A DNA stretch of 64,000 nt from Dendrobates tinctorius (GCF_039654945.1 NW_027361754.1:29264001-29328000), one strand, 5' to 3'; shown: positions 8,338 to 32,859, counted from the stretch's first letter. Translations and numbers: made by a program. The notes: generated by a model not told the origin, from the sequence alone.

Positions 8338-9558
8338 TCAGCGCCGCGCATCCTGCGCCGTTTTTTCACTTGGTGCCCGAGCCCTGGTGCAGGCTGAAGA
8401 GGTCTCTGCAGCAGCAGAGTCTCCGGAACGATGGGGAAGGTCTGGGGCAGAGGCGTCATCAGTTACCTCTGTTCGTGGATCCATGTCTTCTCCGGTGGGA
8501 TTGTTTTCCTCTGGGCACAGGATGACTGCCACGGCTTAGAAGCCCCATGGGCAGTCTTCCTTATAAAAAGAGATCCAATCCCCGACATGTAGGGCTCTCC
8601 CATGTTTAGTGAAGGCGGCATTGATGTAGACTTTATCATGAGTGCCAGCCTCCTCAGTGAAACCATAGCCGCATTCCATGTTTGTGAAAACGAGCTGTCC
8701 ATACGTGTGGTGCGCAGACATTGCGGCCTCCCCTCTCTCACGAAGGAGGGCTCATATCTCGCACTCTCTAGCCTTCTTCTGCGCAATTATGTCGGATATC
8801 CACACCGACGGGTATACGAATGATGTGGGCCCAGTGTTTTCCGCAGAAGCCTGACGGGAGCGCGGGAGTGAGGTGGCGCTGGTCTTTTGCCTAGTGTCGG
8901 CAGTGCCCCGGGGAGGTGATGGTGCAGGGGCTGCATGACCCGTCACTCGCTGGGGTTGAGGCTCACTCACCTCTAATGCGCTCACTGTCCCACTCAGACT
9001 GGTCCTCATCTCCTGTAGGTACCGCCTCATGCCGGAGGCCGGAGACTCCACCGACTCTGCTCCTTCTTCTCCACAGACATTGTTGGTGCTCTCAGACATT
9101 TCAGTGGCTCCCTTCTCCTCCTTTTCCTCCGGTCGGGTGAGCGCCGTCAGCTCGCTGAACTTGCTCCCAGGGTGAACGGATGTTCCGCCTCCTGCCATCT
9201 GGCAGGAACAGCTTCCGGGCACAATGGTTCCTCGGCAGAAGTCAGCGGTGCTTCGTTCCTCGATTGCTCCGGGACGGTCTGTGCTGCAGGCGGATGCCTT
9301 TCCGGCATGTTGTTTGGCTCCGTCCCTGCAGACCCCACTGTCACAGGCACCGTCATCTTCCAGAGATCTTCTCTCTGGCTGAATGCCTTGTGCTCCTGCA
9401 GATCTCCCCAACCATGGGCGGGTGTCTAGATTCCTTGTCCCGCCGCCACCGCCATTCTGTTCACCGGATGCCTCTGCAGCCGCACCGATACATCGTGGCC
9501 GATGTCCCGTTCCATTCTGATGCCAGACAGCTGCACTCAGCACTTCCTGCAGAACCAC
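8338..9558 (-). pseudogene. Cargo ORF of element A: low-complexity region + cold-shock-domain-like domain (two in-frame stops)
   Basis: ORFs 8752..9558, 8536..8721 and 8338..8532 are in one frame; stops fall at W and Y positions of the homologue at 30385..31104; motif YGQLVFTN-GYGF-KVYIN-LHVGDWISF-GF*AVAV. Confidence 0.75.
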
Positions 9559-9968
9559 ACCTGTTCCAGGGTGGGGTTATCTTCTGCCTCCCCACCCATT
9601 TACGTGCTTTGGGTGGCAAGGGGTGAATGTCCATCTTTACATAGCACTCCCACCAGGGGCGGACCTGACATTGCTGACAACTCTTGTTTGGCGCCATCCA
9701 GATGCTGCCACGCCCACGAAGTGCACCTTGCAGACAGAGACATTCCTTTTTGGCACCACAGCTCTTCATCTTGGTGGCCGCCATCTTGGTGTTCACAAAG
9801 TCATTCTCCATTTCTTCTTTTGACAAATCCGGTGTTTTGGTCACATTCAGTATAATTTTCTCATCGACACAATCTTCAACCTGCTCACTATGGGTCACTT
9901 TAAATCACTTCCACTTTGTCTTCCTTCTTCACCCCTGCTGCGGCTTCACAACTATATGGGGCAGTGAG

Positions 9969-9986
9969 ATCCTGCCGACTACGCCA
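9969..9986 (-). other. Primer-binding site complementary to the tRNA-Ser 3' end
   Basis: Minus strand TGGCGTAGTCGGCAGGAT, 2 nt from the LTR end; complementary over 18 nt to vertebrate tRNA-Ser ...ATCCTGCCGACTACGCCA. Confidence 0.92.
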
Positions 9987-9988
9987 CT

Positions 9989-10956
9989 TGTAAGATACCG
10001 ACAGGGTTGTAGTCATGGCCTCATTCTCAGGGCTTCGCTTACCCCAGATCTTCTCCTCAGATTAATTATTCACCCGGATTGGATGCTGCTCTCTCTCTTT
10101 TCTATAGACAGGGTCTCTCCGTCATATCAGCACAACCTGTATTAACAGTGTTGTCAGCTACTTCTTCACTGCTGTGTTCCCCATTTTTCCCTGCATTCAA
10201 AGGACAGGAGGCGGAGTCCAAAGCAACTTTAAACAACACAGGTTTATTATCTTCAGGACACAGCACATCCATTAAACTTCCAGCACATTCTTCACAATAC
10301 CAGCAGCACATTTCTCTGTCTTTCCCTGCTTCTCCCTCCACATCACGGAATAAGCCACAAAGATTTAACGGGACGAGGTGCCCGGTGAAAACGCTACTGC
10401 AATATATCTCCCTTCATCCTGCTTCGTCTCAGACTCAGAAATTCTGTCTACAGGGACGTCCACCACGTCAACGGTTAACCAGCCCGCCCACTTTCACGGT
10501 GGCCCACTCTATCTTCTTCTGCTACTCACTTCACTTTCCACTCCACTGCTGTGCATACTATGCTCTTTACTCTTCTCTTCCTTTTTTACTCTTCTACTAC
10601 TTTCTAGGGATGGATGGGCTTCTTATAATGTTACGTGGCAGCTGAGCAGCCCAGGCCATAGGCCACCTGAGCACACACAGGGGTCTTCCCCTGACTGACT
10701 ATGTACCAGAAAACTCTCTATCTTATTCCCTGCTAACCCCTCCTATTGTTAACTCCTAAGTGTCCTACAGCTAAACCTTACTATGCAGTCTACTCAGTGC
10801 CCCCATCTAGTGGCCCTTTTCCCTAACTGCACTGTCTCTATCTTACATATAGTATAAATATATGAAATTACGTCACAGTGAGATACATAGCAACTATATA
10901 CATATAAATATAAATAGTAGCATGAATTTAAAGGGGTAACGCTTACACCCCTTACA
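9989..10956 (-). repeat. 5' LTR of element A (968 bp), containing a ~44-bp Penelope 3'-tail fragment
   Basis: TGTAAG...CTTACA termini; homology to 813-900/7364-7807; ~10063-10105 matches the Penelope end at ~7322-7363. Confidence 0.9.
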
Positions 10957-11179
10957 CAGCATTGAAGGGTCTGCTTTGAGGCTTAAATTAATTTTGTTGT
11001 CTAAGCTGGGGTTTGATGAACAACATCTTGGCTGCCGAATTAGACAGAGAGCATCTGTGAATCTGCCCGGTGTTGGAGGAGGACGACATAAGGAAACAAC
11101 TCAATAATGCCAATTCTTTTGCCAGGCACAATGCCAACCAGTCAGTCACCACAGCCAGCCAGCTCACCAATGCCAGCCA

Positions 11180-11676
11180 GCTCAGTCGCCACAGAGGTAC
11201 TGCACCTTCTCCTAAGATGTGGTGCCCCACCATCCAGGTAAGGTGGGAACTCCTGACCACGCTCCAACTTCCAGTAAAGCTTTGGAACTACAATCCCCGG
11301 TGTCCTCCATTGATTCTTGCGCCAACACAATCAGCACCGCTACATCTGGGTATCAGCTTCTACACCGCCTGCGCCTCTCCTCTTCCCCTACATCCACACT
11401 GCCCTGGGGCTACAGCTCCACCTGTGGGGAGCTTCACCATCTTGACTGCAACCCATCACCAGCCCCAGAGGATCTACAAGCAGCGTCGGCCTAACATCTC
11501 ACTTGCCAAACACCACAGGTGGCGTCACGAACTATTCCATCTAACTACATTCCACCATTCACAATTTCCCCAGTACTTGGGCGCCCAGGGCCATGGTCCG
11601 GGTCACTGCTGCTGTGACACATCCCACTGATACCGGCCCGGTACCGAGTACCCCACGGCCCTGGGAGGGCGACCCA
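11180..11676. mobile_element. Internally deleted LTR fragment, inverted relative of the solo LTR at 37128-38408
   Basis: Reverse complement of ~38306-38393 joined to the reverse complement of ~37128-37520; ends GGGCGACCCA. Confidence 0.8.
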
Positions 11677-11739
11677 TTACTCCAGGACAGACCTTGGACG
11701 CATGGCAGCTGACCCCCAAAGGGGCAGGTCGATGGAACG

Positions 11740-12450
11740 ACCAAGATAAGATGGGCTTGACAAGTACAGGCAGGCATGACAGTAATACTGGGAGATACGC
11801 AGGTGTAGACAGGTACATCTGATATACAGCCTGGTATGGCAGGTGCAGGCAAGTACGACTGGTATACAGACTGGTACAGCTGATGTACTTTCAGGCAGGT
11901 GCTGGCGAGCGTGACTGAAATACAGACAAGCTGATGCAAGTGGGCATGTCTGATATACAGACAGGCTGGTGCTGGAGGGCATGGCTGATATACAGGCAGG
12001 CAGGTGCTGGTGGGCACAGCTAATATTCAGACTGGTGCTGGTGGGCACATTTGATATATCAGGCTGGTGCAGGCTGGCACAGCTGATATACAGGCAGGTT
12101 GGTGCAGCTGGGCACGGCTGACATACAGGCAGGCAGATGGTGGGCATGGCTGATATACAGGCAGGCAGGTGGGCATGGCTGATATACAGGCAGGCAGGTG
12201 CTGGTGGCACAGATGATAAACAGACTGGTACTGGTGGGTACATCTGATATATCAGGCTGTTGCATGCAGGCACAGCTGATATACAGGCAGATTGATGCAG
12301 GTGGGCATGGCTGATATATAGGCAGGTTGGTGCAGGTGGGCACGGCTGGAATACAGGGACACAAGGCAAGTATGGGCAGACAGGTACCGGACAGGTAAAG
12401 TAACTGGCGTATACAGGGGACCTGACAACTAGCAAGCATGCAGACAACTG
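11740..12450. repeat. Degenerate minisatellite (GCTGATATACAGGCAGGCAGGTG-like)
   Basis: Repeated GCTGATATACAGGC motif; generates repetitive ACLYIS/VYQPCP ORFs. Confidence 0.8.
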
Positions 12451-12497
12451 ACTTTACATATTGCTCAGACACCTCCATTCATTTGGAAGTGCCTTAA

Positions 12498-13223
12498 AGG
12501 GAATCTGTAACCCCTTTTTTCGAATATGAGCTGCCAGCACCGACATCAGGGGCTTATCTACAGTATTTCGTAGTGCTGTTAAGCCCCCAATGTAATCTGA
12601 AAGAGAAGAATAAAGAGTTAGATTATACTTACCCTGGCGTCCGGTCCGATGGGTGTCGCCATCCGGTCCGGCGCTTCCCATCTTCATACGATGCCGTCCT
12701 CTTCTTTCCTTCCTGTCGTAGCTCCTGCGCAGGCACACTGCTCTGCCCTGTTGAGGGCAGAGCAGAATACTGCAGTGCGCAGGCGCCAAGAGATTTTTTT
12801 TAAACTTATCTACAGCATTCTGTAATGCTGTAGATAAGCCCCCGATGTAACCTGAAAGATAGGAAAAAAGAGTTAGATTATACTCACCCCGGTGTCCGGT
12901 CCGGTCCGATGAGTGTCGCCATCCGGCGCCTGTGCACTTCAGTATTCTGCTCTGCCCTCAACAGGGCAGAGCAGTGCGCCTGCGCCGGAGCCACGACAGG
13001 AAGGAAAGAAGAGGACGGCATCGTATGAAGATGGGAGGTGACGGACCGCAACACCCATCGGACCAAGACCGGACTGCCCCTCCTGGTGAGTATAATCTAA
13101 CTCTTTTTTCTTCTCTTTCAGGTTACATCGGGGACTTATCTACAGCATTACAGAATGCTGTAGATAAGCCCCTGATGGCGATGCTGGCAGCTCATATTTG
13201 ATAAAAGGGGTGACAGATTCCTT
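12498..13223. mobile_element. T2/Kolobok-type MITE
   Basis: TTAA TSD at 12494-12497 and 13224-13227; TIR AGGGAATCTGT...ACAGATTCCTT; long internal inverted repeats. Confidence 0.88.
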
Positions 13224-14379
13224 TTAAATAATAAATGGTTTCCAGCCACTGGCTGGGGACACATTAGGATGGCACAGTTCCCGGGGATCGGCGAGCGGTG
13301 CACAGATCCCGGGCAGCAGCCAGAGGAGGAAGTGCGGGACGGTGGCAGGACAATGAGTGAGTTGGTGACCCTACAGGGGACTGGAGAAGCGTGCAGGTAC
13401 ACTGGAGCTATAATATCACAATATATTTTATCCACTCTACCATTAATAGAAACCTTTATCAGATATAAAGGACATGTTTCTATTGCCAAGAAGGTCATTA
13501 TTACGAATCTGTTTGGACGGTGCAATGGCTGAAGATCCTGTACTAGTCCTGGATAGGTTGGTGTTCACATTAGACCTCGATAAATACAAATAAGGATGAT
13601 AAAAATAAAATAAGATCTAAAATTACAGAGAGCCGTTAATCTGAAGGTGTTATGACACTTTTACACTTACGGGATTCACTGCTCACCTCCGGTTGCACCT
13701 CGCAAAAATAGAACCTGTCACGTTCTCGCTGAATGTATTATTAATTGTTCCCAGCTTTCTTTGTTCCCTTGTCATGGGTTTGAAAGTTGTTTGCCTTGGA
13801 ATGGAAAAATCCAACAAAGACTACATTATATTTACAGTGCAAGCCAAGACCAGATTGTATAGAGGGCAAAATGGGCAACTGCAATAGCTTCCACCACATA
13901 ACTGCCACCACACACCAAGACCCTCAGACTCCTTCTGGAAATGATCACTTTTTTCATGAACATCTGACAGTAATAGGTTGTCACCAGTAATGATTACTAA
14001 AGTACTGTATATTGGAGAGGCTGGATCTATCCATAATGGAGCTTTCATGGCCCTTCAGCTCACTGTCTATTACTATCTAGAAGTCTACTGACCAAGCATT
14101 TATGTTTATTGCCGAGGAGAGCAGGATATCATTAAGGTTTTTACAAAGTTACACAATAAGAATGAAAAAGTAAAAAAGAAATACCAACAAAACTTTTCAA
14201 TTTACCATAATGGAGCATTGATCCAGTGGAAGGAATGAACAATTCCGGTTATTGCTAATTATCCTCAAGAAGACATCGTTAGGACATCTCATATTCACAC
14301 TAAACTTGGCAATTACATCTCCAATGCAAACTTAACCCCACAGCCATGTCCTTCTCTGACCATGCTCCCACACCTGCTT

Positions 14380-15660
14380 CATGCCTCCTCTGTGCCTCTT
14401 CCACGTCCTTCACACGTCTTTCACGCCACCTCTGAGATTTCTCAATGCGCCCCACAGCTCCTTCATGCCTCCTCTGTGCCACTTCCATCCCCTCTATAAC
14501 TTTTTCACACCTAATCTGTGCCTCTTCATGCCCTCCACACCTTTCACGTTTCCTCTGTGCCTCTTCCATGCCCTGCTCCACACCTCTTTCATGCCATCTC
14601 TGTGCTGTTTCCATGCCATCCATACCTCTTTCATGTCCACTATTTGCCTCTTCCATGCCCTCCACACTTCTCTTGCCCCCTCTGTGCCTCCTCCATGCTC
14701 TTCACATTTCATGCCTCCTCTGTGACTCCTTAATCCCTCCAGACCTTGTTCGTGCCTCTTCTTTTCCTCCTCCATACCCTACAAACTTTTTTCATGCCTC
14801 CTCTGTGACTCTTCCATCCCCTCCACACCTCTTTCATGCCTCCTCTGTGCCTCTGCCATACCTCCTCTGTGCCTCTTCCTTGCCCTCCACACCTCTTTCA
14901 TGCCTCCTCTGTGCCTCTGCCATGCCTCCTCTGTGCCTTTTCCTTGCCCTTCACACCTCTTTCTTGCCCACTATTTGCCTCTTCCATGCCCTCCATATCT
15001 CTTTCATGCCTCCTCTGTGCCTCTTCCATCCCCTCCACACCTCTTTCATGCCAACTATTTGCCTCTTCTATGCCCTCCTCACTTCTATCTTGTCCTCCCT
15101 GTGCCTCTTCAAAGCCCTCCATATCTCTTTCATGCCTCCTCTGTGCCTCTTCCATGCCTCCTCTGTGCCTCTTCCATGCCCTTCACACCTCTTTCATGCC
15201 CACTATTTGCCTCTTCCATGCCCTACACCAGGGCCGGACTGGCGATCTGGCTATTCTGGCAAATGCCAGAATGGCCTGTCTGGTTGTGGGCTGCCTTGTC
15301 TGCTATGTTGTTAGCAGAATCTGTGGTCTCAAGACACGCATACTGTTAAGAGTTGTGATGGAGCACAAAGTCGCTGACTCTGTCACTTACCCCAGCAATG
15401 CACAGGTATCATTGCTTTTTTTTATCAAGGGTAATAATAGTAATATATCCCATCTGGTGCTTGGAGATGGGGACAACATGGGCCTTTGTGATTTCAAATG
15501 CCAGGGCTGAATTTTAGCCCCAGTCCGTGCCCTCCACACTTTTATTTTGTCCTCTCTGTGCCTCTTCCGTGCCCTCTACACCTCTCTCATGCCTCCTCTG
15601 TGCCTCTTCCATGCCCTCCATACCTCTTTCATGCCCCCTCTGTGTCTCTTCCATGCCGTT
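14380..15660. repeat. Pyrimidine-rich minisatellite (~42-bp unit CATGCCTCCTCTGTGCCTCTTCCATGCCCTCCACACCTCTTT)
   Basis: Tandem degenerate units, interrupted by a MITE at 15229-15527. Confidence 0.88.
15229..15527. mobile_element. Short non-autonomous hAT-like element
   Basis: Starts CAGGGCCGGACTGG; ends TCAAATGCCAGGGCTGAATTTTAGCCCCAGTCCG, nearly identical to the right end of 26844-29250; TSD not clean. Confidence 0.7.
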
Positions 15661-15747
15661 TTCCTGGAATATACCTTTAAAAAGTGTTTTTGGAGAACTC
15701 AGTATGTGCCCAGGACATTTGCCTAATCTTCCATGAGTCCTGACAAC

Positions 15748-18052: not shown

Positions 18053-18807
18053 CTGACAACCTCTGGACATCCCGGTAGACTTGGCCTGAATTATTGACAT
18101 GCTATTTCACCATGTTGTTTGCAGTGTTTTTTACTCACAATAATATGTAATGGTGGCCTCAAGCTCAGGGTTTATTGCGATATTTTGATAGTTGATTTAC
18201 TGGTCCATGTAACAAATGCATTGCGTTCTTCCTAGGATCCTTATATTGGAGACTAGAGTTGAGCGATACCGTCCGATACTTCAAAGTATCGTATCGGATG
18301 GTATCGGCCGATCTTTAAAAAAGTATCGGTATCGCCGATTCCGATACCGGAAGTCCCATTCAAGTCTATGGGACTTCCGGTATCGGAATAAGAAAAAACC
18401 TTTCCTGCCCTTGTACAGCCTCTCTGGGGTCTGTACGGGCCTTTCGGGGGGCTGTGCCGGCCTGCCAGGGGGTCTGTGCAGGCTCCGGTGGTCTGTGCCG
18501 GCCTGCCGGTGGTCTGTGCAGGCTCCGGGGGGCTGTGCCGGCCTGCCGGGGGGCTGTGCCGGCCTGCCGGGGGGCTGTGCAGGCTCCGGGGGGCTGTGCC
18601 GGCCTGCCGGGGGGCTGTGCCGGCCTGCCGGTGGTCTGTGCAGGCTCCGGGGGTCTGTGCAGGCATCGTCCGATGGGACTACAAGTCCCATCGGGCGATG
18701 CCTGCTACCATGACAGTGATTGACACATTAGCCAATGATGGGACAGTAGTAGTCCCATCATCCGGCTAATGTGTTAAATGTAAAAAAAAAAAAAAAAAAA
18801 AAAAAAA

Positions 18808-19645
18808 TTACATGCTACATACATACAACATGCATACTACATACATGCTACATTCATACTACATACTACATACATGCTACATTCATACTACATAAATACT
18901 ACATGCAACATACATACTACATATATACTACATGCATGCTACATACATACTGCATGCTACATACATACCACATATATACTACATACATACTACATGCATG
19001 CTACATGCATGCTACATGCTACATACATAACACATATATACTACATGCATGCTACATACATACTACATGCTACATACTACATATATACTACATGCATGCT
19101 ACATACTACATGCTACATACATACTACATATATACTACATGCATGCTACATACATACTACATACATACTACATGCTACATACATACTACATATATACTAC
19201 ATACATACTACATACATACTACATGCATGCTACATACATACTACATGCTACATACATACTACATATATACTACATACATACTACATATATACTACATGCA
19301 TGCTACATACATACTACATGCTACATACATACTACATATATACTACATGCATGCTACATACTACATGCTACATACATACTACATATATACTACATGCATG
19401 CTACATACATACTACATGCATGCTACATACATACTACATGCTACATACATACCACATACATACTACATATATACTACATGCTACATACATACTACATATA
19501 TACTACATGCATGCTACATACATACTGCATGCTACATGCATGCTACATACATACTACATACATACTACATGCTACATACATACCACATATATACTACATA
19601 CATACAATACATTCATACAATACATACATAGACATACAGTACATA
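18808..19645. repeat. Complex (TACATAC/TACATGC)n microsatellite, left arm
   Basis: Direct reading; mirrored at ~20240-20941. Confidence 0.95.
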
Positions 19646-20239
19646 TAACATAGAGTAACATACTTACCAATACTTGTCACATTGTTCCCCGAAGCCATTG
19701 TCTTTTCCGGAATAAATATTAACATAACAAACCACAAAAATACTCACCCACGATCCGAAGCAGTCCACGAGTGTGTCCCACGACGATCTTGGGTAGAGAA
19801 CGGCAGCATCAGCTGTTGCTGCCGTTCTCTACGGGCTGCAGGAATCCAATGACGGAAGGTAGGTATCCTTCCGCACTGTATTCCTCCGCCACTTAAAAAA
19901 AAAAAGTCCCTAGTCTCACTTTATGCCATTGCTGTGTGGGAAATTCCCACGCAGCAATGGCATAAAGTGAGACTAGGGACTTTTTTTTTTTTAAGTGGCG
20001 GAGGAATACAGTGCGGAAGGATACCTACCTTCCGTCATTGGATTCCTGCAGCCCGTAGAGAACGGCAGCATCATCTGATGCTGCAGTTCTCTACCCAAGA
20101 TCGTCATGGGACACACTCGTGGACTGCTTCGGATCGTGGGTGAGTATTTTTGTGGTTTGTTATGTTAATATTTATTCCGGAAAAGACAATGGCTTCGGGG
20201 AACAATGTGACAAGTATTGGTAAGTATGTTACTCTATGT

Positions 20240-20941
20240 TATATGTACTGTATGTCTATGTATGTATTGTATGAATGTATTGTATGTATGTAGTATATAT
20301 GTGGTATGTATGTAGCATGTAGTATGTATGTAGCATGCATGTAGTATATATGTAGTATGTAGTATGTATGTGGTATGTATGTAGCATGTAGTATGTATGT
20401 AGCATGCATGTAGTATGTATGTAGCATGCATGTAGTATGTATGTAGCATGCATGTAGTATGTATGTAGCATGCATGTAGTATGTATGTAGTATGTATGTA
20501 GTATGTATGTAGCATGCAGTATGTATGTAGTATATATGTAGTATGTATGTAGCATGTAGTATGTATGTAGCATGCATGTAGTATATATGTAGTATGTATG
20601 TAGCATGCATGTAGTATGTATGTAGTATGTATGTAGTATGTATGTAGCATGCAGTATGTATGTAGCATGTATGTAGTATGTATGTAGTATATATGTAGTA
20701 TGTATGTAGCATGCATGTAGTATGTATGTAGCATGTAGTATGTATGTAGCATGCATGTAGTATGTATGTAGCATGTATGTAGTATGTATGTAGTATATAT
20801 GTAGTATGTATGTAGCATGTAGTATGTATGTAGCATGTATGTAGCATGTATGTAGTATGTATGTAGTATATATGTAGTATGTATGTAGCATGTAGTATGT
20901 ATGTAGCATGCATGTAGTATGCATGTAGTATGTATGTAGTA
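20240..20941. repeat. Complex (GTATGTA/GCATGTA)n microsatellite, right arm
   Basis: Reverse-complement counterpart of 18808-19645, with a different length. Confidence 0.95.
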
Positions 20942-23427
20942 TTTTTTTTTTTTTTAACATTTAACACATTAGCCGGATGATGGGACTACTACTGTCCCAT
21001 TATTGGCTAATGTGTCAATCACTGTCATGGTAGCAGGCATCGCCCGATGGGACTTGTAGTCCCATCGGACGATGCTTGCACAGACCCCCGGACATCAGCA
21101 CAGCCCCCCGGCAGGCCGGCACAGCCCCCCGGCAGGCCGGTACAGACCCCCACAGGGTGCACAGACCACCGGCAGGCCGGCACAGCCCCCCGGCAGGCCG
21201 GTACAGACCCTGGGCAGTCCACACAGCCCCCCGGCAGGCCGGCACAGCCCCCCGGCAGGCCGGCAGAGACCCCCGGAAGGCCCGAAATGACGGCGCATCA
21301 TGATGCGCACACACCGCGCATCATGATGACGTCAGGCCGTCAATCAACTGAACTTCCGATTCCGATGCCGAATTCCGATATTGAAAAAATATCGGAAGTC
21401 GGTATCGGAATTCCGATACAGCAAGTATCGGCCGATACCCGATACTTGCGGTATCGGAATGCTCAACACTATTGGAGACTCTCTGGCTTTTTCTATGAGT
21501 TCTTGCTACCACAGAGCTCAGATTTCCTGCCATGTCTCCTATAAATAGTAGATTGTCGTGAGGACTCGCAGACTAGAAACGCAAATTTGGGCCGGCGGCT
21601 ACAATGAGGACTCGAGCCTGGAGCAGTTCTGGAACACTTGGAGAGGGAGGGATGGATAATGCGGCCAAGACAGTGGTAGGAATAAAATGAGAAACTTGAG
21701 GATTAGTGTGTGGCTGAAGGACAGCAGACCCTTGATGGCTTAACTCTATAAATACTGGAAAAACCACCGGAGAATGGATGAAGCGTTTGCTACAGTGTAT
21801 GTGACAACCGCTGCCAATTACTTCATCAATCATTAAGAATCGGATCACTTAATGCTGCTCCACTTTCATTCTGTCAGCCGAAGGCTTAGAAATTTTCTTG
21901 TGATTAATCATTCATCTGTTTTCACTGATTTATTTCCCTTAACAATTATAAGAAATATAGCAGCACGAAACACAGAAACTGCTTTAAAAAGTAAAAAAAA
22001 ATAAATCCCTGAAAATTCTTTCTTTAATCCCCTCCTTTTACATTTAATTTGAGAAACATATAAAGAAGTTTCCTCTGTGATATTCAGGAGCTCATCTATG
22101 TACTTCCTCCCTGCTCTGTGTGAGGCTGTAAGACAACTGGCTGCAGCAGGAGCCTCCCCCCTCTGCCCTGTTTGTAATAAATTATTTATTTTACTTAACA
22201 ACTATAACAAATAAAGCAGCGTTAAACACAGAAAATGCATTAAAAAGTAACAACAAAAAACCCTGATATTTCTTCCTTTAATCCCCTCCTTTGACAGTAA
22301 AACTGAGAAATGTATAAAGAAATCTCTGAGACTAAAGAGCTCAGCTATGTCCAGCCTCCCTGCCTTGTGTGTGTGGCTGTAAGACAACTGACTGCAGCAG
22401 GAGCCTCTCCCCTCAGCCCTGTCTGTAATAGGGCAAGAGATCACCCCTTTTATTAAATCAGCAGCAGCAAATGAAACTGATGAGCAGATGAATCCTTTTG
22501 TCCTCTGCAGGATTTCTACACAACTAACCATTGCATAATCATGCAGAAAATGCTGCAGACTAAGAGTCAGATGGTCGAATAACTGATATGGGGATCGCAA
22601 CACAATGCTTGGACTGGCTGGTGGCTCTCCCGAGCAGGATAGCTGCATAGAAATACATGCCGTCTTGCTTAAGTGCTTAAGTAGAGAGCGCTGCCGGCCA
22701 GTCCGAGCATTGCGTTGCGATCCTCATCTGAGTTATACGAGCGTCTGACTCTTCCCTAAGACAGTGAGGACGATCATATTTCTTCTTTAATCATTTATTT
22801 CTAGGTTGAGTGTTCCTTTCATACACTGGGTATTGCATCCTGTCTCACATCTACAAATGCATAGAGAGACATTAGTTCACTGATGTGGCTGCTAACAGAG
22901 AACATGTGCTTTGCCGCGCACACCACATGCAGATATTATTTGCAGCCGCGGAATGAAATGAGAAACATCTATATGTCAATTATGATCTCAAAATGGACCA
23001 GACGATTGTACAGCATCGCAAGCCGAACAATTGTGTAACATGCGGTGTTAAGGGACTTGTGGAAAAAAGTACAACTGCAAATACGTAATATACAGTAGGT
23101 TGAGGAGTGTTATTATCTGTTGCATTATGGACTGTCACCTACTGAGAGGCGAAACCATGAGAAACCCAAATATCATCAATGTAATCATTACAGGGCCGTA
23201 CAGGAGCAGAAGATAATCCTGGAACGGATGGCCATCATTGTTGGCTTTATGCCATATCAATAGATGGATCTTCTGCTTGGAGATTTTTTTATATTATTTT
23301 CTTTACATGTTAATGGGAGTCATCATCTTTCCTGAGCTTATACTAATAGTACATAGAGGTATACAGCAGCCACATAGACCAGGAGGATGAGGTGAGCTGT
23401 GACATCACCTATTGTGAATGATGGATC

Positions 23428-25780
23428 CAGTGGCGTATCTAGGGGGGGCAGCCGGGGCAGTTGCCCCGGGCGCAGCCAGCAGGGGGGCGCAGTCGGGCCG
23501 CCTAATGCAGCGGTCCGCAGTGTCCTCCCTGGCGGCTGCGTTCTGCCGCCCCCCGCCTGAGAGTCGGCGGTTCTCTGTGACGGCTGTCAAGCTGACAGCC
23601 GGTGAAGAGAAGGAGGCCGTGCCGGCTCCCAGGGAGCAATTGTACTGGCGTCTATACAGACGCCTGTACAATTGAAGCTCTGTTGAAGCTCTGACCGCCG
23701 AGCCAGAGCGACGTCAGCAGCGTGATCAGGTCATGTGATCACGCTGCTGACGTCACTCCCCGGCGCCCAAAGCAAACGCTGGTGGTAAGTGTGCTCCTCT
23801 GTGGAGCTGAAGAACCACCGAAGATGGGAGATGGGGAGTTAATGAGTGGAGATGGGGGGGATTTGTAGAGGGGATGGCGGTTAATGTGTGGGGGTATTTA
23901 GTGTGGGGATGGGGGTTAATGAGTGGGGATGGGGGTTAATGTGTGTGGGGGTTAATGAGTGGGGATGCCATGGTGTTAATGTGTGGGGGGATTTGGAGTG
24001 GAGATGGGGGTTATTTAATGTGATGGGGGTTAATGAGTGGGGATTGGGTTAATGTGTGTGGGGGTTAATGAATGGGGATGGGGATTAATGTGTGGGGGCG
24101 TTAATGAGTGGGGATGGGGGTTAATGTGTGTGGGGGTTAATGAATGGGGATGGGGGTTAATGTGTGGGGGTATTTGGAGTGGGGATGGGGGTTAATGAGT
24201 GGGGATGGGGGTTAATGTGTGTGGGGGTTAATGAGTGGGGATGCCATGGTGTTAATGTGTGGGGGGATTTGGAGTGGAGATGGGGGTTATTTAATGTGAT
24301 GGGGGTTAATGAGTGGGGATTGGGTTAATGTGTGCAGGGGTTAATGAGTGGGGATGGGGATTAATGTGTGGGGGCGTTAATGAGTGGGGATGGGGGTTAA
24401 TGTGTGTGGGGGTTAATGAATGGGGATGGGGTCAATGTGTGGGGGTATTTGGAGTGCAGATGGTTATTTAATGTGTGGGGGGATTTGGAGTGGTGATGGG
24501 GTTAATGAATGGGGATTGGGTTAATGTGTGCGGGGGTTAATGAATGGGGATGGGGTTAATGTATGGGGGCGTTAATGAGTGGGGTTGGGGTTAATGTGTG
24601 GTGGTATTTGGAGTGCTGATGGGGGTTAATGAATGGGGATTGGGTTAATGTGTGGGGGGATTTGGAGTGGGGATGGGGGGTTATTTTATGTGTGGGGGGG
24701 ATTTGGAATGGGGATGGGGGGATTTAATGTGTGGGGAGATTTGAGGACACAAAATAAAGAGTATGTATGAGGAAACAGTATGGGGGATTGGTGCAGACAG
24801 TATGGGGAGCGAATGGGTTAATGTATGTGTGCAGACACTGTATGGGGAGTCGGGGGTATGTGTGAGCAGACAGTATAGAGAGTGAGGGGGTAAATATATG
24901 AGGAGACAGTATGGTGAACAGGTGGGATGATAGAGGAGACCGTATGAGGAGGGAGGGGAATAGTGTGAGGAGACAGTATATTGCAGATATTTTTATTTAG
25001 GGGCATTATAATGACACTTCTATCTTTAAGGGCGTCGTGTGGAGATTTGTTGCAGAAGACCGGAGAAGATGGAAGTCTGCAGAGATGAGATGTGGATGAG
25101 AAAACTCATCATGGGGTCTGGAAGAAAAGGTGACTGACTCTAGAGACGACGTCATCTATAAGGTACCTGGATGTAAATGTTATTTGTGATACTGACTAAT
25201 TCTCATGTTTTTATTTGTTAGGAACATTAAAGGGGTTGTCGGAGTCTGCAGTCATTCTATGTGACTGCAGACGTCTGAATTCTCACAGTGCTCACTGAAC
25301 GCTGTCAGGATTCTCTCGTGCCGGAAATTTACATACATGAGGTCACATGCTGACTAGACATGTGTGGCCTCACTCAACGAAAATGAACGGAGCGAGGCCG
25401 GGCACGTCTAGTCGGAATGTGGCCAGAAGTATATAAATCACATACTTGTGCTGACATGACGGTACATCAGCAAGGGAGAATCCTAAAAGTGTGCAGTGCA
25501 TTCGTTGTGAGAATTCAGAAGCAGCAATGTCAGGATTCAGCTCTGCAGGTTCCAGTAGTCATCACATGGACACTTCACTCATATGCGATTTTCTCAGTTA
25601 TGGTCCTGTGACAACGAGCTTCTCTTCCTGCTTCTCTCAGTTTTTTACTGAACATTGAGAGCATTAGGAGGAGCAGCTCGTGGGTACATGGCTAAGTGTG
25701 CAAGTCGCATATGTACTTGGGGGGGGGGGCGCCGAACCGAATTCTTGCCCCGGGTGCCAGAAAGCCTAGATACGCCTCTG
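23428..25780. mobile_element. Non-autonomous hAT element inserted in an ~80-bp satellite
   Basis: TIR CAGTGGCGTATCTAGG / CCTAGATACGCCTCTG; 8-bp TSD GATGGATC (23420-23427, 25781-25788). Confidence 0.92.
23825..24745 (+). repeat. G-rich minisatellite (GGGGGTTAATGAGTGGGGAT)n
   Basis: Dozens of G4-G6 runs separated by short loops. Confidence 0.92.
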
Positions 25781-26340
25781 GATGGATCCTGTAATACCTA
25801 CTGTATATAGAGGTGTTATCGGTCATTATACAGGAGGAGGAGGTGAGCTGTGACATCACCTATTCTGAAGAGTGGATCTTGTGTTATCTGCTGTATGTGG
25901 AGGTGTTATCAGTCATTTTACAGGAGGAGGAGGTGATCTGTGACATCAACTATTGTGAATGATGGATCCTGTGTTATCTACTGTACATAGAGGTGTTATC
26001 AGTCATTGTACAGGAGGAGGTGAGCTGTGACATCACCTATTGTGAATGATGGAACCTGTGTTATCTACTGTACATAGAGGTGTTATCAGTCATTGTACAG
26101 GAGGAGGTGAGCTGTGACATCACCTATTGTGAATGATGGATCCTGTAATACCTACTGTATATAGAGGTGTTATCAGTCATTATACAGGAGAAGGAGGTGA
26201 GCTGTGACATCACCTATTGTTAATGGTGGATTCTGTGTTATTTGCTGTATGTCGTGGTGTTACCAGTCATTGTACTGGAGGAGGAGGGGACTTGTGACAT
26301 AACCTATTGTGAATGGTGGATTCTGTGCTATCTGCTGTAT
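25781..26340. repeat. ~80-bp tandem satellite (CAGGAGGAGGTGAGCTGTGACATCACCTATTGTGAAT...)
   Basis: About 7 units here; a further unit at ~23355-23427 and another block at ~33188-33720. Confidence 0.9.
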
Positions 26341-26843
26341 GCTTGTATGCGGTTTTGTATGTTTCATGGCCAATGTGAACTTGCGTTTTTTATGCTGCAT
26401 GTGTACCAACTCAAACCAAGCTCAATTTTTTTGTCTTTTTCTTTGTATTTTTGCATTCTGTGCAAGCTGCGGTGTGGCCTCCCTCTCTTGAGCTGGAAAT
26501 TGTATTTAAAGGCTTCCCCTGACTTGTGTCCTAGTGGTTGGGACCCGGTCCTTTTGTCTGCCCTTATTCACACACTGACGTCAACTTTGACACATGATAA
26601 GGTTTTTAATATTAGACAGTGTAGGACCACTCCGATCACAGAGTCACCTTGTCGTGGTGGGACGACTTTTATGCTATAATTGATAGAATACAGTATTACT
26701 AAGAACTCTGAATTATTTAGATGCACTTTTGCTTTTTATTTATTTAATTACAGCAGGGTTTTTCTCATTTTGCCTTTTGTAGGTTTTGTATGCTTCATGG
26801 CCAATGTGAACATGCGTTTACATGCTGCATGTATACCTGTGGG

Positions 26844-29250
26844 CAGGCCCGGATTGGCAATATAACCAACCGGGCATTTTCCCGCTGGGCCGCTGTCACG
26901 TGGGCCGCTTGCCAGCTGCTGCGGCCACTGTTGCTCCTGCCGCTGGCCCTCTGCGGGCATGGCGGTGATAGTTTCAAGTTCCTCCCGCACTGCAGGGAGA
27001 TAAGCCGCCACGCCCCCCCTCGCACCCCATCCTCGCCTTAGCATGAGATGAGACCCCCTCCCCCCTGCAGCCACTCAAAGTGTCGCACTCGCTTGCCTGC
27101 TCGCTCTGTTCACAGGACCTGTGATGAGGTCACAGGAGGGGAGGAGTCAGGGGGTCACATGATCAGGAGCCTTTGTCCAGACCCCCGATCATGTCACCCC
27201 TGACTCCGCCCCTCCTGTGACCTCATCACAGGTCCTGTGCGCTCAGCCTTGCCTCTACCGTCTGCAAGACTCTGCTTTGCTGTTGTCATGGTGCTGGTTG
27301 AGGTAAGTATGTGTGGGGTCAGGATTTACAGTGTGGATGTAGCAGAGCTGTGTGTGTATGAGGTGTACGGAGCGGAGCCGTGTGTACGAGGTGTACGGAG
27401 CGGAGCCATGTGTACGAGGTGTACGGAGCGGAGCCGTGTGTACGAGGTGTACGGAGCGGAGCCGTGTGTGTACGAGGTGTACGGAGCGGAGCCGCGTGTA
27501 CGAGGTGTACGGAGCGGAGCCGTGTGTGTAAGGGTGGTTTCACATTAGCGCTTTTTAAGCGCACGCACGGCCGGGGGTAGCTCCGCCCCCAAGCCGGCTC
27601 TCTGCCCGGCGCGCCCGCCCCTTGCTTGTATCGCCGCCTCCTAGCGCACAGCGGCGCCTGCGATCGGCGCACCCTATCTTTAGCATAGGGTGCGCAGATC
27701 GTGCGCAGGTCGTGCGCTAGTTGCGCTTTGACCTGCGCTGCGCACTTTTGACGGTGCGCCGTGCGCGCCAAAATCAAACTTTTCGGATTTTGGCGCGCAC
27801 GGCGCACCGTCAAAAGTGCACAGCGCAGGTCAAAGCGCAACTAGCGCACAGCCTGCACACGATCTGCGCACCCTATGCTAAAGATAGGGTGCGCCGATCG
27901 CAGGCGCCGCTGTGCGCTAGGAGGCGGCGATACAAGCAAGGGGCGGGCACGCCGGGCAGAGAGCCGGCTCGGGGGCGGAGCTACCCCCGACCGAGCGTGC
28001 GCTTAAAAAGCGCTAATGTGAAACCACCCTTAGAGGTGTACGGAGAGGAGCCGCGCGTGTACGAGGTGTACGGAGAGGAGCCGCACGTATACGAGGTGTA
28101 CGGAGAGGAGCCGTGTGTGTATGAGGTGTACGGAGAGGAGCCGCGCGTGTACGAGGTGTACGGAGAGGAGCCGCGCGTGTACGAGGTGGACAGAGTGGAG
28201 CCGTGTGTGTATGGAGTGGAGCCATATGTGTACGGGATGTACGGAGAGGAGCCAAGTGTGTACAAAGCATACAAAGCGGGCTTTTCCCACGGACACAGGA
28301 GTACACGGCGGAGTCCCGAGGAGCATTTTAAAACACACACATGACGTTCCACCTGAAGTGATGTGCTGGAAGCTGACCGGAAATGAGATAATTTCTTGAG
28401 GAGATTGTGACGGAACCAGGAATGCTTCACATCCATCACCGTGTCCTCCTCCGACAGCACAGACAGCAGGATCGCCTTGGAATCGGGGATGTCGGCCATG
28501 TGAGCGGATCATGATAGGTCCTGCACCGGGATGCTCAGGTGGGCACTACAATGGGAGCCGGGCTGCTATAGTATCTTTATAGAATCTTTCTTTATTTCTT
28601 TCTCTCTTTTTCTTTCTCTCTCTGTTCTTTCTTTCTCTCTCTAATCTTTCTTTCTTTCTCTCACTGTTCTTTCTTTCTCTCTCTGTTCTTTCATTCTTTC
28701 CCCTTTCCTTCTCGCTCTCTCTGTTTTCTTTTTTCTCTCTCTCTCTGTTTTCTCTCTTCCTTAGTGCCAGTCAGTGTGCCCATAATGCCAGCCACTGTGC
28801 TCTCAGTACCAGTCAGTGTGATCAGCAGTGCTAAATGGGTGCGATTAGGTGTGGACATGGGTGTGACTAGTTGTGAAATGGGTGTGGCTCAAAAATTTGT
28901 AGCGGCGCAGTCTTTGTCCGTCTTTCCCTTCTTCAAAAGTTGGGAGGTATGATAGGGGCAGCTATGACCAGGGGGTCTGGTTGCCCAATAGAGAGCAGTT
29001 CTGCCAGGAATTCTGGAATCATGCATACAAAAGGGGACAGAGCTTTGGGAGGAGTACTGTACCTAAAAGCAATAAATAGGACTGAGCTGAAATACTGAGC
29101 ACAGCTATGACTACATGTTATATAGTCGTGTTAATCTCCTCACTTCTTGTAAACTACAAGTGTACAAAGATATTATATAGTCACCATGTGACTAGTGGGC
29201 CTGTGTAACTTCAAATGCCAGGGCTGAATTTTAGTCCCAGTCTGGCCCTG
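26844..29250. mobile_element. Non-autonomous hAT element
   Basis: Ends CAGGCCCGGATTGG / CCAGTCTGGCCCTG; 8-bp TSD CCTGTGGG (26836-26843, 29251-29258); internal GTGTACGAGGTGTACGGAG array and a CT-rich tract. Confidence 0.9.
27532..28029. mobile_element. Fully palindromic CpG-rich PIF/Harbinger-type MITE
   Basis: GGGTGGTTTCACATTAGCG...CGCTAATGTGAAACCACCC; TAA/TTA flanks; near-identical ORFs on both strands; centre ~27780. Confidence 0.92.
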
Positions 29251-29252
29251 CC

Positions 29253-30008
29253 TGTGGGGAGGTTGAGCTGGGTACGGTTCTGTCTGTGATAGGAGACAGA
29301 GTTTGACAGCAGGTGTCATGTGGCAGTCTGCCCATCAGAGGTCACTGGAGAGCGCCGATGGCAGTGATTATGTAACTGTCATTTGAGTGTTACATAACTG
29401 CCAGAGGTCAAGGTGACTCTGATTGGGCAGAGGTGACTGTCAGGTGACAGAGGGTGGGGCTACCTGGTCTGTCTGAATAAATACTGAGGTAAGCTTCCAG
29501 AAGCTTCAGTCAGCCAGGGGAGCTCACAGGTTAGGAGAGTTTGTCACACAAAGGAGACCCCTCAGAGACTTTGGACAGTGGAAACGGTCACGAGGGGGTG
29601 ACCCTATAGGACATTGGTCACAGGCAGAGACGGCCTGTGAGGACCTGTATTATTGGTGGACTTTGTAAGGTGAAACGCCGTGTTGGATTGGCCTAGGGCA
29701 GCCACGGCAGATAGAGCCACGAAGTACGCCTGACGGAGAAAGTGTACAAGTGAAGGTACTCGGGCCTGTCTGCAGGAGGATAACAGTGTGAAACATCTGT
29801 TGTGTTTTGTTCTGGTCGTCGTGAGGGCGGCCAATAAAAGCAAGCCTGTTGAATAAAATTCCTGCCTCTGTCTCGTGCCTGTCGATGTCAAGAAGTGGGT
29901 CACCCCCCATTCCTGTGAGTACAGCACACCTCCGCTGCCTACCAGCCACACCACCTAAATACCACAGCACGCTACCCTCCGCCCCAGCCTGCCACCCGGA
30001 CCTCTACA
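29253..30008 (+). repeat. 5' LTR of element B
   Basis: High similarity to 32098-32852; TGTGGGGAGG...CCTCTACA; AATAAA near 29833 and 29852. Confidence 0.93.
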
Positions 30009-30010
30009 TT

Positions 30011-30027
30011 TGGCGTAGTCGGCAGGA
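30011..30027 (+). other. Primer-binding site complementary to tRNA-Ser
   Basis: TGGCGTAGTCGGCAGGA, 2 nt after the LTR; same PBS as element A. Confidence 0.92.
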
Positions 30028-30384
30028 GCCATCACCGCAAATACAACATCTTCAGCAGTAAGCCTGCGCCAGAAGAATCAAAGGACCCTAAGCTGTGTGG
30101 GTTGAAGATTTTATTTTTCCCTGTGGATTACAAAAATTGGACTGTGAATTGCTGGATTTCTGCAGGTGGATCTGGAGCGAAAAAGGCCTTGTTAAAAATG
30201 GCTGTGGCAATTTGGCACCAAAAAGAAGCACAGGAGTTTGCAGCCACCTTGGACTACCAGGAACAGCTGCTAGAGGAGCTGTTGCCTACCATCCATGCAG
30301 AGTCATCGGGCCTGGAGGCTGGCCCTGCCGGACGGCGGGGTGAAGAACATCTGCTGCTGAAGGAGCTGTGGGATCGACTGTCGG

Positions 30385-31104
30385 GTGCCGGGGAAGGTGA
30401 GCGTTACTCCGGCTCAGCTGGCGGCACTGCAGGCAGATCCCGCCCCCATGCCCCGTGTACGAGATACCGGCCCCCGGCCGCCTCGCCTGACCTCTCGTTC
30501 TTCAGCGACCCCGGCCCCGCCCCAGACCACCGCGGCCTACTCACCGGCATCCGCGGCTGCTGCTGCTCCATCCGTGGCCCCTGCTGCGGCCTTCTTGCCG
30601 GAGCTCGCGGCTGCCTTGATCCCTGCTGCGGCCTGCTCCGCGGCCTACCCGCTGATGCCTGTGGCCGCCTCTGTCCCTTCCGTGACTCTGGGTGCGGCCT
30701 GCTCCCCAATGTCCGCGGCCGCCTCTGCCCCATTCTTGGCCCCGACTGCGGCCCGCCCACTGGACTCTGTGGCCTACGCCGGACCCTCCACCTGGGTTGC
30801 GGAGATTAATGAACAGAAGGGGGCCAAAGAGTGGGAGGTGTGGGCACTGCTACACGAGAAAGGAGAGGCAGCCATGACTACCCCTCAATCATATGGGCGG
30901 CTTGTACATGCTAACACCGCTAAAGACTACGGGTTCATCTGGGACCTCGCCACTAGCCACAAAGACTACCTCAATGTGACCCCCATCGGACATGGACGGG
31001 CTCTGCGGGAGGGAGACCCGGTCTCCTATTACAAAGAATACTGCCTTTGTGGCTACTATACGGTAGCGGTCATCACCTACCCTGAGGGGTATGAGCCTCC
31101 ATAG
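30385..31104 (+). CDS. Cargo ORF of element B: Pro/Ala-rich linker + cold-shock-domain-like C-terminus (N-terminus probably frameshifted into ORF 30102..30809)
   Basis: YGRLVHAN-KDYGFI-KDYLN-LREGDPVSY-GYYTVAV matches the spacing of the CSD pattern GxVxWFN-KGYGFI-DVFVH-LxEGxxVxF-GxxAxNV; 49/101 identity to the element A ORF. Confidence 0.7.
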   Translation: MPGKVSVTPAQLAALQADPAPMPRVRDTGPRPPRLTSRSSATPAPPQTTAAYSPASAAAAAPSVAPAAAFLPELAAALIPAAACSAAYPLMPVAASVPSVTLGAACSPMSAAASAPFLAPTAARPLDSVAYAGPSTWVAEINEQKGAKEWEVWALLHEKGEAAMTTPQSYGRLVHANTAKDYGFIWDLATSHKDYLNVTPIGHGRALREGDPVSYYKEYCLCGYYTVAVITYPEGYEPP

Positions 31105-32097: not shown

Positions 32098-32852
32098 TGT
32101 GGGGAGGTTGAGCTGGGTACGGTTCTGTCTGTGATAGGAGACAGAGAGTTTGACAGCAGGTGTCATGTGGCAGTCTGCCCATCAGAGATCACTGGAGAGT
32201 GCCGATGGCAGTGATTATGTTACTGTCATTTGAGTGCTACATAACTGCCAGAGGTCAAGGTGACTCTGATTGGGCAGAGGTGACTGTCAGGTGACAGAGG
32301 GTGGGGCTACCTGGTCTGTCTGAATAAATACTGAGGTAAGCTTCCAGAAGCTTCAGTCAGCCAGAAGAGCTCACAGGTTAGGAGAGTCTGTCACACAAAG
32401 GAGACCCCTCAGAGAATTTGGACAGTGGAAACGGTCACGGGGGGTGACCCTATAGGACATTGGTCACAGGCAGAGACAGCCTGTGAGGACCTGGATTATT
32501 GGTGGACTTTGTAAGGTGAAACGCCATGGTGGATTGGCCTAGGGCAGCCACGGCGGATAGAACCACGAAGTACTCCTGAAGGAGAAAGTGTACAAGTAAA
32601 GGTACCCAGGCCTGTCTGCAGGAGGATAACAGTGTGAAACATCTGTCGTGTTTTGTTCTGGTCGTCGTGAGGGCGGCCAATAAAAGCAAACCTGTTGAAT
32701 ACAATTCCTGCCTCTCTCATGCCTGTCGACGTCAAGAAGTGGGTCACCCCCCATTCTTGTGAGTACAACACACCTCCGCCGCCTACCAGCCACACCACCT
32801 AAATACCACAGCACGCTAGCCTCTGCCCCAGCCTGCCACCCGGACCTCTACA
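32098..32852 (+). repeat. 3' LTR of element B
   Basis: Follows the PPT; direct repeat of 29253-30008. Confidence 0.93.
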
Positions 32853-32859
32853 TACCAAC

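Follow-up and report, generated by a model that had tools for sequence, protein, structure and literature searches.

The stretch of DNA analysed here, hereafter the window, comprises 64,000 nucleotides of Dendrobates tinctorius (GCF_039654945.1 NW_027361754.1:29264001-29328000), contains no N runs and harbours two short LTR retroelements without a recognisable pol, named here A (minus strand) and B (plus strand). Both of them are flanked by 4-bp target site duplications (TSDs) and possess a primer-binding site (PBS) complementary to tRNA-Ser(UGA), a polypurine tract (PPT) and an interior of about 2.18 kb (A) and 2.09 kb (B), in which a single gene could be recognised. The features of the two elements are the following:

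813..10956 (-): element A, whole (LTR-interior-LTR), with a ~6.4-kb foreign insertion at 886-7321 inside its 3' LTR; TSD GCTG at 809-812 and 10957-10960
9989..10956 (-): A 5' LTR (TGTAAGG...CTTACA), with AATAAA about 260 nt before its end
9969..9986 (-): A PBS, 18 nt complementary to the 3' end of tRNA-Ser(UGA)
9464..9784 (-): A N-terminal ORF piece, starting at the conserved ATG and carrying the CxC...CxC motif, in a different frame from the rest and ending in a stop
8755..9558 (-): A linker region plus the first helix of the conserved domain, ending at the in-frame TGA at 8754-8752
8497..8811 (-): A conserved helix-helix-CSD domain (predicted), broken by stops at 8754-8752 (TGA) and 8538-8536 (TAA)
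7810..7843 (-): A conserved hairpin (7843-7825) and PPT (7820-7810)
7807..7322 plus 885..813 (-): A 3' LTR, split by the ~6.4-kb nested insertion
26838..32852 (+): element B, whole, with a 2.4-kb hAT-like insertion at 26844-29250 (8-bp duplication CCTGTGGG) six bases into its 5' LTR, which starts at 26838 (TGTGGG); TSD TACC at 26834-26837 and 32853-32856
29253..30008 (+): B 5' LTR body (TGTGGGG...CTCTACA)
30011..30027 (+): B PBS (tRNA-Ser, 17 nt)
30198..30384 (+): B degraded N-terminal part of the ORF, with the conserved ATG at 30198 and a frame change before 30385
30385..31104 (+): B open frame of 239 codons covering the Ala/Pro/Ser-rich linker and the domain, with the first ATG in this frame at 30448
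30790..31101 (+): B conserved helix-helix-CSD domain (predicted), intact
32062..32097 (+): B conserved hairpin (32062-32080) and PPT (32084-32097)
32098..32852 (+): B 3' LTR

The two LTRs of A are 94% identical and those of B are 95.5% identical. The PBS of both elements, TGGCGTAGTCGGCAGGA(T), equals the antisense 3' end of human tRNA-Ser (PMC3299991). Regarding the interiors, neither of them has a Pfam hit for capsid, RT or integrase, and a tblastn search with the gag and pol of the Gypsy elements of the window itself found nothing. No DNA similarity between A and B was found by blastn at E 1e-3, and a more sensitive run matched only the PBS, the PPT region and short stretches; their DNA aligns only at the primer site, the polypurine region and the coding domain. 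In contrast, their proteins match by tblastn with an E-value of 1.1e-26 in the whole window (44% identity over 131 aa), and the domain aligns without gaps at 49% identity over 99 comparable codons, in agreement with the initial annotation, which had counted by hand 49 identities over 101 aa and whose sequence claims were all reproduced. Nonetheless, both copies of the window are broken.

A third copy and the shared layout

The domain is not confined to these two copies. A search with the B domain (phmmer) against 1.84 billion representative proteins retrieved with an E-value of 1e-27 the D. tinctorius protein designated here P0001 (431 aa), an intact single ORF located at 10001-11296 of the sequence designated here L001. 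The element that encodes it (L001 9028-12456) has the same layout, i.e., LTRs, a TSD (TCTG), the same PBS with one mismatch, the hairpin and the PPT. Taken together, the three copies share LTRs of the form TGT(A/G)(A/G)GG...(C/T)TACA, 4-bp target duplications, the tRNA-Ser(UGA) primer site, matched over 17-18 nt, a conserved start codon about 190 nt after it, a conserved 7-bp-stem hairpin just upstream of the PPT (AAGGAAGGG(A/G)G), and a single gene. In its intact form (P0001), the gene product has a weakly conserved N-terminal part carrying a CxC...CxC motif, a long Ala/Pro/Ser-rich middle stretch predicted to be disordered, and C-terminal ~100 residues predicted to form two helices followed by a five-stranded cold-shock-domain (CSD) barrel.

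The location of this ORF raises the possibility that it is a much-derived gag, in which the CSD would take the place of the zinc-knuckle nucleocapsid (NC) of an autonomous Ty3/Gypsy or class I ERV family of these frogs, A, B and the L001 copy being internal-deletion derivatives that kept only this part. The ORF sits where gag sits, its layout (N-terminal part, proline-rich linker, nucleic-acid-binding end) recalls MA-p12-...-NC, and some non-autonomous LTR elements, such as BARE-2 and MaLR, appear to keep a gag-like ORF. However, no capsid-like fold or Pfam gag signal appears anywhere in the 431 aa, residues 1-327 being predicted without confident structure, and no polyprotein carrying the domain is among the 1.84 billion representative proteins. 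Furthermore, three divergent subfamilies share the same short layout and a 2.1-2.4-kb interior, which suggests that the short form itself has been propagating, and the two Gypsy elements in the window have an ordinary Retrotrans_gag and different PBS sequences and lack the hairpin. This alternative is therefore considered unlikely, although it is the strongest of the rivals, since these searches did not extend to anuran genomes, where an autonomous relative might be found.

The predicted cold-shock domain

Four independent tests call the conserved domain a CSD, as the initial annotation had proposed from the spacing of its motifs. First, a family profile against the PDB returned 31 hits, at least 26 of them Csp or Y-box proteins, the best being CspB (5jx4, E 0.0014), aligned over strands 1-5. 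Second, hhalign against true CSD repeats gave a probability of 93.4% (E 2.6e-7). Third, two AlphaFold models built on different first sequences both show two helices plus five strands, located at 34-42, 47-52, 58-61, 77-85 and 88-94 of the B domain and at the equivalent positions in P0001, although the alignments are very shallow and the confidence is only moderate (in the P0001 model, the pLDDT of the domain is about 53-78 by ten-residue block, mostly 65-78). Fourth, the top ~30-43 hits of Foldseek against the PDB are all CSDs, with TM up to 0.77 and rmsd 2.3 Å. In addition, the first phmmer hit of the B domain after P0001 is a true 5xCSD protein (E 3.4e-6). In spite of this agreement, the Pfam CSD model (PF00313) is not reached at its gathering score of 27 bits: it is the only hit for P0001 (16.1 bits, E 0.01), it is among the three weak top hits for the A piece (12.6 bits, E 0.13), and it is not reported for B.

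At the motif level, RNP1 is kept on strand 2, reading KDYGFI in B, REYGLI in P0001 and CGYGFT in A, aligned to KGYGFI of CspB. The RNP2 motif of strand 3, however, is not kept, since the family has (D/V)Y(L/V/I)N(V/A), where the aromatic at the CspB Phe27 position is retained as Tyr, but His29 is Asn and Phe30 is Val/Ala. Nucleic-acid binding is therefore not assured, and the domain is acidic in two of the three copies (pI 5.1-5.2). Since every single score is modest (Pfam below threshold, PDB profile E of 1e-3, Foldseek E of 1e-3 to 1e-4, pLDDT of about 60-78), it could be argued that the resemblance is spurious, and that the domain is another small β-barrel (such as SH3, Tudor or chromo-like) or not folded at all. 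This appears very unlikely, because four methods agree, the hit lists are almost purely CSD and no SH3, Tudor or chromo entries appear near the top.

Selection on the domain and its inferred role

The domain has a dN/dS of 0.09-0.17 (bootstrap upper limit 0.33), with saturated synonymous differences (pS 0.69-0.78) against a pN of 0.25-0.32, and the third codon positions are 33-46% identical against 68-79% at positions 1 and 2. The linker and the N-terminal part, on the other hand, give about 0.6. This low dN/dS between subfamilies shows selection on the replicating lineages, but not what the protein was selected for. It also bears on whether the CSD could be a transduced host gene fragment carried as passive cargo, as oncogenes are carried by acutely transforming retroviruses. 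LTR retroelements do capture host domains (PMC5408684, PMC9289625) and CSD proteins are ordinary host genes, but passive cargo would not keep such a dN/dS across subfamilies whose synonymous sites are saturated, and the start and position of the ORF are conserved. Furthermore, no host-like parent was found in the protein collections, without a direct search of frog genomes: the nearest sequences outside the family are bacterial-type Csps and a protist-like 5xCSD protein at borderline E-values, vertebrate YB-1 reaches only E 0.05-0.1, and Lin28 and CARHSP1 do not appear by sequence. We regard this explanation as improbable.

Based on the above, A and B are best explained, with a probability of roughly 0.55, as dead copies of two divergent subfamilies of one lineage of non-autonomous LTR retroelements in dendrobatid frogs, in which a CSD protein may stand instead of gag. 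It is inferred that these elements are copied and integrated by the RT, integrase and particles of an unidentified autonomous helper using the same primer and LTR ends, although no helper with the same PBS or hairpin is in the window or in L001, and only three copies are known. It is likewise inferred that the CSD protein serves the propagation of the element by binding its single-stranded RNA in cis, which might imply stabilising or chaperoning the RNA, or bridging it to the Gag of the helper. The host CSD proteins YB-1 and Unr do this kind of job for retroviruses, as cofactors that meet Gag/NC and genomic RNA (PMC6040738, PMC4486188, PMC9413769). The protein might instead be kept for a conflict function, for example blunting host silencing or RNA decay, or competing with the RNA of the helper for particles. 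The long disordered linker evolves fast (omega about 0.6), as interaction surfaces in conflicts often do, but no direct evidence supports this doubtful alternative, which is not exclusive of RNA binding in cis.

The initial annotation had proposed satellite retroelements that encode their own RNA-binding factor, for example for packaging into the particles of a helper, and its reading is supported as far as it could be examined, since neither the predicted fold, nor the selection on the domain, nor its occurrence in a third copy refuted it, although RNA binding by the protein and its role for the element are only inferred. In its broadest form, this would be a long-lived lineage that has dispensed with gag and pol and uses its own CSD protein to get its RNA stabilised and packaged, constituting a new functional class of retroelement protein, possibly abundant among the large “unknown LTR” fraction of big anuran genomes. 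This is possible, but remains tentative. If confirmed, it would show that a parasite of retroelements can invest in its own RNA-handling protein, it would add the CSD to the short list of folds that retroelements use on their RNA, and it would mirror, in cis, the recruitment of YB-1 and Unr by retroviruses. From a practical point of view, a large share of LTR elements in the D. tinctorius assembly matched only the “Unknown” repeat category (PMC11152451), and a recognisable protein marker could help sort part of that fraction.

Comparison with known systems

No gag or accessory ORF with this domain turned up in the 1.84 billion representative proteins, in Pfam or in the literature that could be consulted, and we could not find such a cargo described for any LTR retroelement. 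Non-autonomous LTR elements are usually seen as non-coding hitch-hikers or as gag-only deletion products, whereas this lineage keeps a different predicted fold, of a kind that binds single-stranded nucleic acids, under purifying selection, while everything else except the cis signals has diverged. The elements mobilised in trans (mouse VL30 and ETn, mammalian MaLR/THE1, plant BARE-2, LARD and TRIM) have a similar anatomy, in that they probably keep LTRs, PBS, PPT and TSD with no RT or integrase of their own and so depend on the enzymes and particles of a helper. VL30, ETn, LARD and TRIM, however, carry no conserved protein, and the single ORF that MaLR and BARE-2 appear to keep is gag-related, while here the only conserved folded module is the predicted CSD and no capsid-like part is detectable.

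With respect to CSD proteins (bacterial CspA/CspB and eukaryotic YB-1/FRGY2, Lin28, CSDE1/Unr and CARHSP1), the frog domain shares the predicted five-stranded OB barrel with an RNP1-like (K/R)xYG(F/L)I motif, the conserved Asn of strand 1 and LxEGDxVS(Y/F) in strand 4, with homology detectable at profile level. It differs in the sub-threshold Pfam score, in the replaced RNP2 His and Phe, in a family-specific two-helix N-terminal extension (WVAE..QK..E.EVW.LL..KGEA.M) and in being encoded by a mobile element rather than by a host gene, with no close host parent found in the protein collections. LINE-1 ORF1p and retroviral NC are element-encoded single-strand nucleic-acid binders and chaperones that act preferentially on the RNA encoding them, which is the function inferred here, but ORF1p uses a coiled coil, RRM and CTD, NC uses CCHC zinc knuckles, and both belong to autonomous elements. 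Lastly, LTR retrotransposons with captured additional ORFs or domains, i.e., those of bdelloid rotifers (PMC5408684), the orchid Ty3/Gypsy elements with an ALKBH demethylase domain (PMC9289625) and the plant aORFs (PMC7264820), have also fixed a non-canonical protein domain that is likely to act on their own RNA or life cycle. Those elements, however, keep gag and pol, the extra ORF being an addition, while in the frog elements the non-canonical protein is the only gene.

Anatomy of the two elements in the window

A self-comparison of the window, which contains no N runs, reveals two LTR pairs, one belonging to element A on the minus strand and the other to element B on the plus strand. The main features are the following:

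10956..9989 (minus strand): 5' LTR of element A (TGTAAGG...CTTACA)
7807..7322 and 885..813 (minus strand): 3' LTR of element A, split by a ~6.4-kb foreign insertion
886-7321: the ~6.4-kb insertion inside the 3' LTR of A, including a reverse-transcriptase fragment (5242-6075, Pfam RVT_1 E 7.6e-15), probably from a non-LTR or other retroelement
26838 (plus strand): start of element B, where the first six LTR bases (TGTGGG) sit
26844-29250: a 2.4-kb insertion six bases into the 5' LTR of B
29253-30008 (plus strand): 5' LTR body of element B
32098-32852 (plus strand): 3' LTR of element B
32860-33147: a palindromic MITE with 32-nt inverted ends (94%) and an 8-bp duplication ATACCAAC, abutting the 3' end of B
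25695-26374 and 33088-33724: a 90-bp-period satellite flanking both sides of B, into which B and the MITE inserted

The shared LTR parts of A are 94% identical and GCTG flanks both ends of the element, while the LTRs of B are 95.5% identical and TACC flanks 26838 and 32852. The initial annotation was right in placing the start of B at 26838, in spite of the insertion that immediately follows. This insertion shows an 8-bp duplication CCTGTGGG (26836-43 and 29251-58) and short, imperfect terminal inverted repeats (CAGGCCCGGATTGG / CAGGGCCAGACTGG), so it looks like a non-autonomous hAT-type element, and it carries 28-30-bp tandem arrays (27333-27533, 28003-28293) and a 247-nt palindrome (27529-28032). 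As for the neighbouring MITE, its left duplication overlaps the last base of B and its target site duplication (TSD).

Both interiors (about 2.18 kb in A and 2.09 kb in B) begin, two bases after the LTR, with TGGCGTAGTCGGCAGGA(T), a string that is the antisense of the 3' end of human tRNA-Ser as printed in PMC3299991, and both end with a polypurine tract (PPT). At E 1e-3, blastn detects no similarity between A and B, and a more sensitive run finds only the primer-binding site (PBS), the PPT region and short stretches. At the protein level, in contrast, the 239-codon frame of B (30385-31101) hits A at 8865..8497 with E 1.1e-26 in the whole window, and the last ~100 residues align without gaps at 49% identity. 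Element A carries two in-frame stops, TGA at 8754-8752 and TAA at 8538-8536, plus a frame change upstream, whereas the domain of B is intact but its N-terminal part is frame-shifted; these broken frames were analysed as separate pieces or with X at the stops. No capsid, RT, RNase H or integrase signal exists in either interior. The initial observation, namely that A and B are two divergent LTR elements sharing a conserved protein, with no recognisable capsid, RT or integrase motif, is confirmed in every particular.

A third, intact copy and the predicted fold of the conserved domain

An exhaustive phmmer search with the B domain against 1.84 billion representative proteins found one family member, P0001, an uncharacterized protein of 431 aa from Dendrobates tinctorius that is 58% identical over the domain (E 1e-27). 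Two other proteins returned by this search (P0003 and P0004) are repeat-driven false positives that carry no CSD. The locus of P0001 (L001) shows a single uninterrupted ORF at 10001-11296 inside an LTR element at 9028-12456, whose LTRs read TGTAGGG...CCCTACA (with the shared part being 96% identical), whose TSD is TCTG, whose PBS is the same with one mismatch and whose sequence before the 3' LTR is the same as in A and B. P0001 was rejected as a host gene, being a single ORF inside this LTR element, which lies within the span of a SLAIN gene model. P0001 aligns to B over residues 168-430 (E 4e-52) and to A over 260-430 (E 3e-31) and, in another frame, over 41-97 (E 1.6e-6); the whole gene, and not just the domain, is therefore homologous, and the start codon aligns in all three elements, about 190 nt after the PBS. 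Other repeats in L001 are 85-91% identical to repeats in the window, and two inverted blocks of an 11/18-nt-period satellite (18426-19680 and 20214-21282 in the window) recur, about 90% identical and in the same inverted arrangement, at L001 14098-17123. With the rate used for that genome, 2.5e-9 per site per year (PMC11152451), LTR divergence puts the three insertions at roughly 6-12 million years.

Word-indexed protein searches with the domain region of P0001, the B domain alone and an alignment (A1) returned only P0001, and neither back-translated scans of metagenome and viral contigs nor a DNA scan for the hairpin-PPT motif found anything, although these collections hold little frog DNA and a blank there says little.

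Regarding the nature of the domain, different approaches point in the same direction. The CSD model of Pfam is the only hit for P0001 and is among the three weak top hits for the A piece, but it stays below threshold (E 0.01 and 0.13, respectively). The next hit of the exhaustive search after P0001 is a protein with five bona fide CSDs (E 3.4e-6), and hhalign against these five repeats gives 93.4% probability and E 2.6e-7. While a PDB search with the single B domain found nothing, a profile of the three frog sequences searched against all PDB sequences returned 31 hits, at least 26 of them cold-shock or Y-box proteins, the best being CspB 5jx4 at E 0.0014, aligned from strand 1 to strand 5. 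AlphaFold models of the B domain (pLDDT 60) and of full-length P0001 both give two helices followed by five strands, and in the P0001 model the domain blocks have pLDDT about 53-78, mostly 65-78. An alignment that included the N-terminal pieces (A5) was not used for modelling, since MAFFT misplaced them. Foldseek against the PDB puts only CSDs at the top for both models (CspA, CspB, YB-1, YBX2, CRHSP-24, Lin28 and Unr), with TM-scores reaching 0.77 at 2.3 A, and against viral predicted structures the top hits are CSD proteins of phages and giant viruses, with no retroviral protein appearing. The RNP1-like motif (K/R)xYG(F/L)I, the strand-1 Asn and LxEGDxVS(Y/F) are kept, whereas the RNP2 His and second Phe are not. 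The domain is therefore assigned as a divergent cold-shock domain with a family-specific two-helix N-terminal extension, for which nucleic-acid binding is plausible although untested. A spurious fold assignment is considered very unlikely.

Residues 1-327 of P0001 have no Pfam match and no confident predicted structure (the full-length model gives none before residue 329), and Pfam on the N-terminal part, the linker and every other interior ORF gave nothing. Residues 166-325 are 24% Ala, 16% Pro and 11% Ser. The N-terminal part shares a stretch with A, at 38% identity over 61 residues, that contains a conserved CxC...CxC cysteine pattern (P0001 residues 68-90; window 9625-9449, minus strand), which may bind metal.

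Selection, cis elements and the inferred mechanism

Between the three copies, the domain has pN 0.25-0.32 against pS 0.69-0.78, which is saturated, and dN/dS is 0.09-0.17, with bootstrap upper limits of 0.33 and no replicate reaching 1. Third codon positions are 33-46% identical, against 68-79% for the first two positions, while the linker and the N-terminal part give a dN/dS of about 0.6. The selection on the cargo proposed in the initial annotation is supported, although, as for any transposable element, it reflects selection on the replicating lineages and not on the dead copies seen here. Without a search of frog genomes, a passively carried host fragment cannot be ruled out, but it is considered unlikely, and a conflict function is unlikely as well.

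Besides the PBS and the PPT, all three elements keep a hairpin with a 7-bp stem ATTGTCG/CGACAAT and a four-base loop (with one U-G pair in A), which lies five or six bases upstream of the PPT and, in each case, folds better than nearly all shuffles:

7825-7843 (minus strand): hairpin of element A
32062-32080 (plus strand): hairpin of element B
L001 12140-12158: hairpin of the third copy

Apart from this hairpin, the PBS and the PPT, no other non-coding sequence is conserved between A and B. The LTR ends are similar as well (TGT(A/G)(A/G)GG... and ...(C/T)TACA), and these shared signals point to a common or related helper enzyme set. Such a helper was not found among the elements of the window itself, where the following features lie:

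46206-51607 and 54651-60428 (minus strand): two full-length Ty3/Gypsy elements with gag, PR, RT, RNase H and IN ORFs, whose LTR pairs are 96.4% and 98.7% identical, respectively
51664-53472 (minus strand): a hAT transposase ORF (DUF4371 plus the hAT dimerisation domain) between the two Gypsy elements
43428-45584 (minus strand): a pogo/Tigger-like transposase ORF (BrkDBD, HTH_Tnp_Tc5, DDE_1) containing a 63-bp tandem array (44766-45552, 95-98% identical units) within the frame
45907-45923 (minus strand): a 14-of-17 match to the tRNA-Ser PBS (TGGCGTTGTCAGCGGGA) just upstream of the pogo-like ORF, probably by chance

The two Ty3/Gypsy elements have PBS regions that differ from tRNA-Ser, no hairpin and an ordinary gag, and they were rejected as partners.

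The elements cannot copy themselves, because they lack RT, RNase H, integrase, protease and capsid. The most economical reading is that of a satellite retroelement, transcribed from its LTR, reverse-transcribed from a tRNA-Ser primer and integrated with a 4-bp duplication, all by the proteins of a helper. Its one protein ends in a predicted single-strand nucleic-acid-binding fold that has been kept by selection, from which it is inferred that the protein acts on the RNA of the element itself, stabilising it, chaperoning it or linking it to the Gag of the helper. There is precedent for this in trans, since YB-1 is found with MMTV Gag and RNA in assembling particles (PMC4486188) and Unr/CSDE1 binds HIV-1 NC and Gag (PMC9413769). 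The probability given to the anatomy and the CSD assignment is about 0.9, and that given to this mechanism about 0.4-0.5.

Relation to known elements

In a limited literature search, no description of a CSD or OB fold encoded by an LTR retroelement was found. Non-autonomous LTR retroelements are already known, and what appears to be new here is the type of protein cargo. The elements are not TRIM or LARD elements, because they code, and they are not gag-only derivatives by any feature that could be tested; without a search of frog genomes, a much-derived gag of an undiscovered autonomous family remains possible, but it is considered unlikely. In life style, these elements resemble VL30, ETn, MaLR and BARE-2; in the inferred role of their protein, they resemble NC and L1 ORF1p; and in predicted fold, they resemble Csp and Y-box proteins.
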